From Adineta vaga (taxonomy: Eukaryota > Animalia > Rotifera), in NCBI GenBank assembly GCA_021613535.1, contig CP075492.1, forward strand, positions 5,456,001 to 5,520,000: a stretch of DNA of 64,000 nucleotides. The letters run 5' to 3'. Every line of letters begins with the position of its first letter. Within the stretch, counting starts at the first letter, position 1. The translations under genes and the position numbers were made by a program. A model generated the notes under the pieces. That model saw only the letters and a list, made by a program, of their open reading frames with translations, had not been told where the DNA came from and did no database searches. This document shows, one piece after another, positions 27,569 to 31,365 of the stretch.

Positions 27569-28173
27569 ATGATTTGTTGAATGGTAGAATAGACATGGAA
27601 AAAGAATCTATTATATATATATATATAACTCAATAGAAGAAAAAGAAAAAAAGAAAGAAAAAGAAGAAGAAACATTCCAACGATACTTAGTTCCTCTTGT
27701 TGTTTTATTTGAGGAAAGAAAATAATAAAATACATTTAGAATAAGTTGTTTTTAGAACAACTAAAATATTTATAGATGAATTGATAAACAAGTTATCTTT
27801 TCGTTCTGGATTTTGTTCAGTCTCAAGAGATAGTCTTTTGTTAGAAATTGACATGATATCATTTGTTCCAACTCATAAAAACCTATTGATATTCATACAA
27901 AAGAAGAAGAAGAAGAAGAAGACAAAAAAGCTATTTTTGTTAATTAGAAAACATTCTTTACCGTGAAAAATAATTATTATTTGACAAAAACAGATTCTTA
28001 TCGAATTGTTCTAACATTCAACCTTTAACTATATCATTGGCATTTGACGATAAAAAATGATGTGGCATTCTTTCACGCTCGATAAAGTATAATAATTAAC
28101 CATAAATATATAAACTTCCTGAACTATTATTATTTGAATAAAATACATATTCAGATAATCAACACGAGAATTC

Positions 28174-28377
28174 AAAAAAAAATGATTGGATAGCGTGCAG
28201 GGATTCTAAGTACATGACAGAGCATCAGGCCATTCGACAGGTGAGTTGTTACACACTCCTTAGCGGATGACGACTTCCGTGTCCACCGACCTGGGTTCAT
28301 TACAGCAAACCGACGCCCATTTTGTCATCCCTCCAGTTCTCAGACGAAGTATCCCTGCTTGAATACAGGCCAATCAC
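28174..28377 (-). ncRNA. Candidate ~200-nt structured RNA carrying a copy of the 28S rRNA GTPase-associated centre (H42-H44)
   Basis: Minus strand of 28231-28293 reads CAGGTCGGTGGACACGGAAGTCGTCATCCGCTAAGGAGTGTGTAACAACTCACCTGTCGAATG, matching eukaryotic LSU H43-44. It is enclosed by nested non-rRNA stems and followed by T9. Confidence 0.75.
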
Positions 28378-28519
28378 TAAGATTTTCTACCTTTATTTCT
28401 TCTTTTTATTCTGTTATAAAATTCAAGTTGTGCAATAACATTCTTTCTATCGTCAGAAAAATCAAAAAATTAAACCAATAAAAATCCGACATAAAGTATC
28501 GTTGATAGATCTGATAAAA

Positions 28520-29484
28520 TTAAAACCAACGTGTCCGTTCCCATCCATATGATATTCTTGGTCGTTGACGATGATGATAATAATAATGGAGAAGATTCGA
28601 TGATTTACCATCATAAGTATGATTGCGTTGTATTAATGATATATCTGTATTAATACGAATAAAAGCAAGAAAATTTAAATATTTATCATTAGAATATTTC
28701 TTTCTCAATCTTGTATGACATCGATATGACATTGATAAATAACCACGATTGAAATCTTCATAGAAAAGACGATATGAATCCCAAAAACCAAAATCAGTAT
28801 CAGATCGTTTTGTTTCGAATAGACAATGACGTTCATTTGCTTCAATCTAATTAGCATTCATTTTGCTCTTTATTTTTTCCAAGTGTAATTTTACTTACTA
28901 AACCAAATAATTGATGATTTTGACCACATAAATAACGTTGACTTTGTTTATGTTGAATAAAAAACAGATTGACAGCAATTGGAAGAAATACAAAAGTACC
29001 TGAAAATTCAAATTCATATTCTGATTTCATGACCTTTATCAATTCGAGTAATGTTCTTAAGTATGTGTTGACAAGAAGATCTTGCCTCTTTATAGTCATT
29101 TGTCAAGTGTCTAAATCAATTATTCGAACTTATTAACAGTTCATTACGATCGAAAGATAAAAGTCATTGACACAATGGTGTAAATCTCTGCCAATCAATA
29201 GACTATCAATTATTTGACTTACCGTCGTTTGTCTCCTTTGTATCATGAAGATCGGTAATATGTTTCGCATGAATATAACCATCCATTGAACGCATTTGTA
29301 ATAGACATTGACTTTTAGAAATAATTTTATAAGTTGAAACAAGTTTTTCTCGTTCATCATACGTATCACGTTCATTACGTGATGGTAAATAATCGATCGA
29401 TGTCGAAGATAAAGATATAATAAATGTTAAATAGATTATTAAAACAACAAATTTTTCATACAGAATATCATATAGATCAAGCAT
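28520..29484 (-). CDS. Divergent secreted fibroblast growth factor-like protein; 3 exons
   Basis: Signal/hydrophobic N-terminus; beta-trefoil-like YKIISKSQCLLQMRSMDGYIHA, IAVNLFFIQHKQSQRYLC, HCLFETKRS...WDSYR; introns at FGF-typical positions. Confidence 0.7.
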
Positions 29485-30584
29485 GAGAGAAGACGTTACT
29501 GGTTGAAATAGAACTTTTAATACGTATATAATTATTTATGAATAAGAACGTTAAAGAAGTTTCATTCTCCGATAGAATAAATATAAACGTTTGCAAATAT
29601 GAAGAGAATTAGGACAATTAACCTTAGAAATGTTATAGAATAGAAGAAAAAAAACCAAGGAACTTGTGGATATGATTTAACAACAGAAAAGAAAGGACAG
29701 AACAAGTTAGTTTTTTTTTTCTTATAGAATATAGAAGGGTAGAATATCAACTAGAGAAAGAAAAAAAATTGGACTAAATTATGATTGATATTGGTACATT
29801 CGTACTAAGACACTTGTTATTATAAGTAATAAGATATTCTGGTAAAACTGTATTGTCAATTCGATGTATACGAACTATAGATGATGCAACAACTCTTTGA
29901 AATTCACCGGATTCTTTTGATACCACTTGTATCAGGTAAATCAAAACGAGAACCGAATGTATCACATGTTTGAATATAAGAAGAGCAAATGCTTCATCAT
30001 CTGACATACTGCTAGAATAACACATTCGACTTTAATTTGACCTTGGTTAATAATTAAACAAATTTTGTTCAAATGATTGTTGAAGATCATACGATAGTTT
30101 TATGAAGAAATTAAACTAGAATGATGCTTTTGTTTTTACTACATTCATGAGAAAAATTCTTTTTATTCTCAATTGACCCTGTGTCGATAAGGTATAAAAA
30201 GGAACTGACTGATTCAAAACTATTTTAAAGATGATAAGAACAACAAAAACCCTTACAATGTGTCATGGGATAAAGTTATACGTATTCTTTTTTAGCATCG
30301 GTAAAATTACATTCTACATCGTATAGATATATATATTTATATGCGATGGATGCATGGAAATTGTTTACTTATCAGTTATTTTTATAGGACCATTACGTTA
30401 TCAATGAATATTGGTAAAACACAGTTGAAGCACTCATAGTTTTATTAAAATCCGCTGGCAAACACATTTACTTCGACCAGAAATCTCGTGCATATAATGA
30501 TCGAGATTCGTATATGTATGTCGTAACTACCAAGCTATTTATTATGATATTCGACTGAAATTATAGAAAAAAAAAGGTATACAT

Positions 30585-31365
30585 TTAATGATTTTCATCC
30601 ACATGAAACTCAATAGTTGTTGATGGTGTGACAACTGGATTATTCAATAGAAGTCCACGAGCAATTGCACCTCGTTCAATTTTTTCCAAATCTGTTTGAT
30701 GTAAATGAATTTTTGCTCGTGTAACACGAAAATAAAAACCAATTGCAAATAAAATAAATGGACAACCAACAAGACAGAGTGTAATAAGTGCAGATATTGC
30801 TGCTGGACGAGAAAATCCACTAACCTTAATCCAGATAATAATTCCAAGTTCAATTATAAATAAAAATAAACCAAGACCCGTCGAAACAACCCAAGCTATT
30901 TCAATGTAAACATTCAATGAAGATAATGGTTTACTATTTTCATTATTGATCCACACATCACTTTGACGAATAACACTTTTTAATTCAGGTAAAATACACA
31001 TAGACATTAATAATGCAAGAAGATGTATACCAACTAGTAGACATGAAATAATTGCATAACATATTAATAAGCCATCATTTGAACTATGATCTTTATAAGA
31101 ATCTAATGATAATTCTACGATTGCCACCTTACAGATAACAAGAACAAAAAAAAAATAAGTATTCAAAAAGAAAAAAACTTACAATAGCGAATCCACTAAG
31201 TAATGCCGATGTTTCATTGACACTTTCAAGTTTAGATTTACGATAGAATAAATTTTGTAATCGTTGATCAGTTTTATTCGTTCCTAGAACAGATAGATTG
31301 ATACAATTATTTCATTGATAATAGAGTATACCTTTCGTCGATAAATACAATGAAGAATCGGACAT
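30585..31365 (-). CDS. ORAI: Orai (CRAC channel pore subunit), divergent; 3 exons
   Basis: TM1 [15 protein letters not shown], TM2 IHLLALLMSMCILP, TM3 YIEIAWVVSTGLGLFLFIIE. Confidence 0.93.

Follow-up and report, generated by a model that had tools for sequence, protein, structure and literature searches.

The base of the ribosomal stalk recruits and activates translational GTPases and, by way of the P-stalk, activates GCN2 and docks ribosome-inactivating toxins. To our knowledge, it has been thought to be present only inside the ribosome. The locus described here raises the question of what an RNA whose tip resembles helices H42-H44 of large subunit (LSU) rRNA is doing in a gene-poor spacer of the bdelloid rotifer Adineta vaga, on contig C3 and hence outside the rDNA arrays, which lie on C1 and C4. 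The window analysed is the whole stretch of 64,000 nucleotides from which the element was reported, C3:5456001-5520000 of the A. vaga assembly (100.8 Mb, 6 contigs), this assembly also being the genome searched. We consider it probable that the locus is a conserved, single-copy, bdelloid-specific RNA gene of ~200 nt carrying an rRNA-derived stalk-base domain, and that the free RNA would assemble stalk-base proteins off the ribosome.

The sequence, strand and coordinates of the unit (28377-28174, minus) are as given in the original prediction. The RNA is predicted to start at G28377 or one position earlier, at the conserved purine 28378, and to finish inside the T-run. Coordinates of the individual features are collected in Table 1.

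Table 1. Features of the predicted RNA gene, in window coordinates, with the evidence or observation attached to each.
Feature	Position	Strand	Basis or observation
Upstream promoter box (predicted) GTTATTGCACAACTTGAA, 18 nt, -62 to -45 from G28377	28422..28439	(-)	Indel-free in orthologues with upstream sequence
A/T-rich, TATA-like box AATAAAAAG, -33 to -25	28402..28410	(-)	Conserved position in all orthologues
Predicted RNA, ~200 nt	28174..28377	(-)	Conserved block against A. ricciae; invariant G-U pairs
Stem 1, 5' strand; pairs with 28182-28189	28370..28377	(-)	92% of cells paired
Stem 2, 5' strand; pairs with 28197-28204	28351..28358	(-)	3 compensatory double-change pairs
Invariant 30-nt block: 6-nt bulge, stem 3, 10-nt internal loop AACTGGAGGG	28326..28355	(-)	Same in 8/8 orthologues
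Stem 4, 5' strand; pairs with 28214-28219	28323..28328	(-)	1 compensatory A-U to G-C change, A. ricciae
H42-equivalent helix, 5' strand; pairs with 28220-28233	28302..28318	(-)	9 bp, UUU bulge, 5 bp
H43/H44-equivalent core (GTPase-associated centre plus closing helix)	28237..28294	(-)	Rfam LSU match; covariation
T9 run, Pol III-type terminator (predicted)	28174..28182	(-)	T5-T9 at the same place in 8/8 orthologues

The apical ~100 nt of the unit is the part that resembles eukaryotic LSU rRNA H42-H44. The Rfam eukaryotic LSU model (RF02543) matches 28306-28229 of the minus strand over model positions 1228-1305, which correspond to the top of H42, H43 and H44, with a score of 61.1 bits and an E-value of 1.3e-13 (the gathering score is 50; the match was recovered in E-value mode, being missed by the filters in gathering-threshold mode). 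The fold is canonical save for one mismatched closing pair. Compared with the 28S copies of A. vaga itself, in the C1 and C4 arrays, the 62-nt core is 89% identical, with 7 differences; the initial recognition of the apex as H43-H44 is thus borne out both by the model and by the host's own rRNA. The 107-nt apical domain as a whole has 71 family-invariant positions, of which 58 agree with the host 28S. The nucleotides of the loops and junction are kept as in rRNA and drift is confined to the stems, where it is accompanied by compensation: the inner stem of H43 covaries between C-G, U-G and U-A, and in the most distant orthologue (L044) a G-C pair of H44 has become A-U. Such retention of rRNA-like loops and junctions on drifted stems reads as the signature of selection on the folded domain.

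The H42-equivalent helix was originally said to be kept in pairing and not in sequence, and double compensatory changes at 6 of the 9 lower pairs (97% of cells paired) are in agreement with this. Its proposed architecture, 7+4 bp with a bulge on the 3' side, gives way to one of 9 bp, a 3-nt bulge on the 5' side and 5 bp. In this register the upper 5 bp come from the Rfam alignment and the lower 9 bp were paired by eye, and both are backed by the covariation counts and by RNAalifold. The 3-nt bulge is absent from rRNA, and in 7 of 8 sequences two pyrimidines stand mismatched at the first pair of the H43/H44 closing helix; either of these departures could alter protein recognition.

Several observations bear on the relationship of the unit to the host's rDNA. 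All 29 of the 28S copies fetched from C1 and C4 (L002-L030) read T in CCGTTAAGG, at the H43/H44 junction, where the unit has C, as does the Rfam eukaryotic LSU consensus, and because of this difference the unit is not a recent copy of the host's own rDNA. Homology is limited to H42-H44: the flanks of the unit, compared with the host rDNA and 28S, score no better than shuffles, and the alignment of the 5' arm of the rod with 28S sequence ~100 nt upstream of H42 (AGAACTGG...GGATG.ACAAAA) has a z of about 1.6, which is not significant. The LSU model is matched at positions 1228-1305 only, and collinear 28S flanks, a location within an rDNA unit and neutral decay, as would mark an rDNA fragment, were not found. 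The lack of collinearity with the host 28S, the shuffle-level scores of the flanks and the covariation of the outer stems in relatives (see below) together uphold the earlier view that this is not passive rDNA debris. The rDNA units themselves are mostly spaced at ~10.4 kb, with several gaps of 11-26 kb among L002-L030 that suggest insertions in some units.

Used as a query, the whole unit has one match in the A. vaga assembly, the rDNA arrays being matched by the 62-nt core only. Each flank searched alone is likewise unique in that genome, as are the element-specific H43 pattern and the 30-nt rod block, even with 3 mismatches allowed. A 28S-derived SINE-like element had been put forward as an alternative, and it is contradicted by this single copy, found with the whole element, with either flank and with both element-specific patterns. 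The upstream neighbours on the same strand are an Orai gene, of which one exon (30585-31166) matches NCBI protein I4U23_012381 with 100% identity, and a gene of 229 amino acids; downstream lie a gene of 95 amino acids and one for a GMC oxidoreductase. As regards target-site duplications, promoter and RNA are bracketed only by a low-complexity direct repeat of 14 nt (12 of 14 identical; 28166-28179 and 28456-28469), which A. ricciae does not share and which probably arose by chance. In A. ricciae, a 376-aa gene with FAF1 and PARP domains is found between the Orai and 229-aa genes (L034:10727-13866, compared with window 28484-30584). Its trace in A. vaga amounts to 60 aligned nt, 29888-29832, and the gene seems to have been lost from A. 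vaga or to have badly decayed there.

The gene order around the unit is kept at the A. ricciae loci anchored on Orai, with the unit at L034:15468-15667 and L035:15649-15848 (L036 is an identical sequence taken from a different assembly). The block conserved between A. vaga and A. ricciae corresponds to window 28443-28177 and is 85-86% identical, as against 72-82% for the neighbouring genes; the remainder of the spacer is not alignable. The A. steineri locus, reached with the first exon of the GMC oxidoreductase as a protein query, has the unit at L063:18571-18369, adjoining the GMC/SBDS block. The unit is accordingly syntenic in three species, A. vaga, A. ricciae and A. steineri. A scan of metagenomes with a 19-mer from the rod yielded four further copies (L043, L045, L046 and L044), which represent three further bdelloid lineages. 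One other match (L042), on a GC-rich contig, was rejected as due to chance.

The most distant of these orthologues, L044, has neither synteny with the window nor any other similarity to it. Its neighbours are other genes, the upstream one lying on the opposite strand. The product of one of them, a DAG kinase, is ~60% identical to both the Rotaria and the Adineta proteins, and its named best matches are all bdelloid. This distance and the absence of synteny together point to an RNA that spans a deep bdelloid divergence and has moved between contexts as a unit. Also on this contig are genes for a protein of 814 aa with FG-GAP repeats and for one with a phage tail collar domain (L044:13-2457 and L044:8362-8988), both of which we take to be typical candidates for horizontally acquired genes. 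The unit was absent from the Rotaria loci reached by way of Orai, DAG kinase or GMC oxidoreductase, as well as from the A. steineri Orai locus and one Logan contig; since none of these is syntenic with the window, the absences carry little weight. A scan of viral contigs for the unit returned nothing.

Outside the apical domain, the 5' and 3' ends of the RNA pair into a rod of four stems (8, 8, 6 and 6 bp) with invariant internal loops. The rod is without similarity to rDNA, and its four stems are those listed in the original prediction. The terminal pair of stem 1 varies between G-U, G-C and A-U, and in A. ricciae that stem is interrupted midway by a 2x2 U/U loop; the double changes in stem 2 are C-G to U-A, A-U to G-C and G-C to A-U. 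Among the parts of the unit not derived from rRNA, the 30-nt rod block (28355-28326) is conserved best; it presumably constitutes a binding site.

The structure was assessed quantitatively on an alignment of 8 sequences (an earlier count employed 7), with a model of 57 pairs that combines the four rod stems of the earlier note, the Rfam pairing of the core and the 9/bulge/5 register of H42. Standard pairs fill 95.4% of the pair cells, and 14 pairs have changed on both sides; none of 500 column shuffles matched these figures. For comparison, sliding the 3' partners by 1-3 columns yields 37-45% paired cells and 0-3 double changes. Compensation is spread over the terminal pair of stem 1, stem 2 (3 pairs), stem 4 (1), lower H42 (6 of 9), the inner stem of H43 and H44, so that the outer stems prove to be conserved and to covary in relatives. 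RNAalifold, run blind, recovers the same rod and the same H42, H43 and H44, with 61 pairs of which 14 are compensatory. The invariant G-U pairs work on the minus strand only, as had been remarked for the single sequence, and identify minus as the RNA strand. Single-sequence statistics are modest, the whole fold having a z of -1.5 and the pairing of flank to flank one of -2.6 (matched by 11 of 1000 shuffles). It is from the comparison of orthologues that the structure draws its real support.

Upstream of the RNA, 95 nt align across species free of gaps, with the box GTWATTGCACMAYWTSRA at a fixed place (Table 1) and a purine at -1. The A/T-rich motif takes the form AATAA(A/G) or ATATAAG in the orthologues. 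At the other end, the nine T (28182-28174) that give the predicted RNA the U9 end noted at the outset have counterparts of five to nine T directly after stem 1 in all orthologues. Both A. vaga 7SL genes are preceded by the upstream box: the gene on C3 has it at an identical distance, and the one on C6 has a degenerate version. Of 10 exact matches to the box in the A. vaga genome, 7 are followed ~62 nt later by a small unit ending in a T-run: the present element, 7SL, two Y-RNA-like genes, a hairpin RNA in a Y-like cluster and two unassigned units of ~185 and ~230 nt. Matches with one mismatch add three more Y-like genes.

The A. vaga genes for U6, RNase MRP and RNase P employ another proximal element (TATTCACCGTT...) together with a TATATAAG box whose geometry is that of the unit's A/T box. 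In L047-L055 (seven U6 genes, RNase MRP and RNase P), which are type-3 genes, the shared sequences are TATTCACCGTTYTTTTTCT at about -65 to -47 and AATATATAAG at about -32 to -23. The small RNA genes of A. vaga with upstream promoters therefore fall into two separate promoter classes. Since the unit's box differs from the proximal element of the U6, RNase MRP and RNase P genes, its assignment to Pol III rests on the analogy with 7SL and the Y-like genes. By that analogy the unit appears to belong to a recognisable Pol III promoter class of A. vaga, comprising 7SL, Y-like and several unassigned RNAs, and is very probably transcribed by RNA polymerase III. The initial suggestion of Pol III is strengthened by a positionally fixed box held in common with 7SL and Y-like genes and by the T5-T9 run of every orthologue. 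Two sequencing runs whose RNA label is a guess (X11 and X14) contain 0.55-0.58 of the sampled 31-mers of 28100-28460 (361 nt), figures that may be compared with the ~0.53 expected of a contig with the transcript only and the 0.71-1.0 of DNA runs; these shares suggest possible expression of the unit. The conservation, covariation and flanking signals mark the locus as a structured RNA gene under selection, equipped with an upstream promoter and an oligo-T end of its own.

The box also marks other small RNA genes. The Y-RNA-like genes, of 90-140 nt, lie at C5:865594, C6:12958107, C1:15358411, C1:15371702 and C1:4605730 (L071, L074, L087, L088 and L079, respectively). They begin AGGTCCGAAA and finish with GACCTTC and a T-run, each ~62 nt downstream of the shared box, and none of the five was reached by Rfam at an E-value of 0.1. 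Unassigned box-led units occur at C3:4802303 (L066), C6:7334459 (L073) and C3:12806507 (L070); one unit of this kind, ~185 nt long, ends in a GGCCTCCGGCC hairpin and T6, and another, of ~230 nt, has ends of the form GGTCGG...CCGACCC followed by T6. The hairpin RNA, of ~45 nt, is found inside a cluster at C3:12.80 Mb that contains many copies of the box, with a sub-threshold Rfam Y_RNA match nearby. Finally, at C1:921475 (L076) a box with one mismatch precedes a ~140-nt unit with a tRNA-like T-arm (GGGTTCAAATCCCAC) and T8; this may be a gene of the tRNA-Sec type whose promoter lies upstream.

What, then, might the RNA do? Isolated H42-H44 fragments of rRNA fold alone and bind uL11 and the uL10/P0-P1/P2 complex, and the same site is used in pre-60S particles by Mrt4, a nuclear placeholder. 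The unit retains what a stalk-base RNP would call for, namely the H42-H44 fold with its loop and junction nucleotides. Because the isolated fragments bind these proteins, and Mrt4 the same site, the RNA should likewise load stalk proteins off the ribosome: by analogy, the free RNA would take up uL11, uL10/P0-P1/P2 or Mrt4 and so form a stalk particle outside the ribosome. Its role could be to buffer stalk proteins, to keep them in store or to hand them over during 60S maturation, or it could titrate factors that dock on the stalk, among them GTPases, GCN2 and stalk-docking toxins. The invariant loops of the rod would probably bind further partners. A coarse, exon-wise count gave no obvious extra uL10 or uL11 paralogue as a dedicated partner. 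More tentatively, and as a possibility in which we place limited confidence, the product may be a free 'mini-stalk' particle, in which a Pol III RNA displaying the GTPase-associated centre with uL11 and the P0-P1/P2 pentamer (or Mrt4) acts in trans, tuning translation factors, GCN2 signalling or stalk-docking toxins or keeping stalk proteins in reserve, for example in desiccation and recovery.

Among other explanations, one accepts a real Pol III RNA and gives its tip a role that does not run through stalk proteins: direct binding of GTPases, the soaking up of a toxin, small molecule, modifying enzyme or guide snoRNA, or simple service as a stable structural module. The rRNA-like loop and junction nucleotides would fit any ligand of the natural site, and the invariant rod block points to additional partners. 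Against this, uL11 and uL10 are abundant and bind isolated H42-H44 tightly, and would be hard to exclude from such an RNA; furthermore, the rod has no antisense match above chance to the host's own 28S, 18S or 5.8S rRNA. We regard this explanation as rather unlikely.

A question of origin, compatible with the stalk-base reading, is whether the gene arose as a 7SL duplicate in which an rDNA fragment took the place of the S domain, the rod then being a reduced remnant of the Alu domain and helix 5 that may still bind SRP9/14. The unit and the 7SL gene on C3 have promoter box and spacing in common, and both RNAs are rods ending in two apical hairpins; the box, however, is also used by Y-like and other genes and hence is not specific to 7SL. 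The 5' arm resembles nt 20-40 of 7SL, with CTGTA followed by 13 of 15 identical positions, a borderline likeness equalled by 18 of 500 shuffles, while no such likeness is seen in the 3' arm and the second 7SL copy does not give a significant match. Moreover, no match to the SRP family (RF00017) was obtained in 27700-28900 at E-values up to 10, whereas the two true 7SL genes score 207-220 bits. An origin of this kind is, on balance, unlikely.

Very unlikely, in our estimation, is a cis-acting element in the 3' or 5' UTR of a neighbouring mRNA, mimicking the rRNA site for autoregulation of stalk proteins in the manner of bacterial L10 leaders. The unit does lie, in Adineta, 100-280 nt downstream of the same-strand 229-aa gene. 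But no ribosomal protein genes are among its neighbours in the window, the neighbours in L044 are different, with the upstream one on the other strand, and the promoter box at fixed distance and the conserved T-run argue for an independent unit. Lastly, rDNA that is inert, whether captured as filler DNA or left as a pseudogene, or else a SINE derived from 28S, would account for the 89% identity of the core with the host 28S and for the weak flanking repeat, yet is hardly credible for a single-copy unit that is syntenic in three species, is more conserved than its neighbours, has compensatory changes in every variable helix and in A. ricciae lacks that repeat.

To return to the stalk-base reading, full-text searches of the literature found no description of such an RNA. 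Should the 'mini-stalk' proposal prove right, the gene would be the first of its kind in eukaryotes, a free-standing RNA gene derived by exaptation from a functional rRNA domain. A separately transcribed, conserved copy would mean that cells can present the stalk base off the ribosome and, if so, have a new means of regulating or protecting translation; it would also reveal a new route by which ncRNA genes originate, in which an rRNA domain is exapted and placed under a Pol III promoter. A by-product of the analysis is the definition of a promoter box common to one class of A. vaga Pol III genes.

The unit can be compared with several known systems. With rRNA-derived SINEs (SINE28, PMC4994717; the 5S-derived SINE3) it shares rRNA-derived sequence and Pol III-type signals, but those are dispersed, multi-copy retroposons without structural selection, and the unit is one syntenic copy with covariation. 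Like Y RNA and stem-bulge RNA it is small, with paired 5' and 3' ends, a U-tail and, in A. vaga, the same promoter class; unlike them it lacks a Ro-binding helix of the GGUCCGA type, is twice as long and has an rRNA-derived apex. The resemblance to 7SL/SRP RNA extends to the upstream box and its spacing, the oligo-T end, the rod with two apical hairpins and a weak similarity in the 5' arm, but the unit has no covariance-model match, is ~100 nt shorter and carries an rRNA-like apex instead of helices 6 and 8.

In its principle of action, the unit would parallel the leaders of bacterial and archaeal ribosomal-protein genes (L10 leader, RF00557), which are likewise non-ribosomal RNAs reproducing the rRNA site of the stalk-base proteins. 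Leaders of the L10 type are cis-acting segments of the rplJL mRNA, rRNA-like by structure rather than by descent; the unit, in contrast, is predicted to be a eukaryotic RNA gene that stands alone and acts in trans, its sequence being truly of rRNA descent and its neighbours encoding no ribosomal proteins. In structure, the closest relative is LSU rRNA H42-H44 (RF02543) itself, with which the unit has in common the three-way architecture, the loops and junction, and a long H42, of 14 bp in the unit and 13 bp in rRNA. It differs in that its H42 and H43 stems have been rewritten with compensation and the outermost pair closing H43/H44 has been lost, and in being a single-copy locus elsewhere in the genome, with a promoter and terminator of its own, that bears the domain on a non-rRNA rod.
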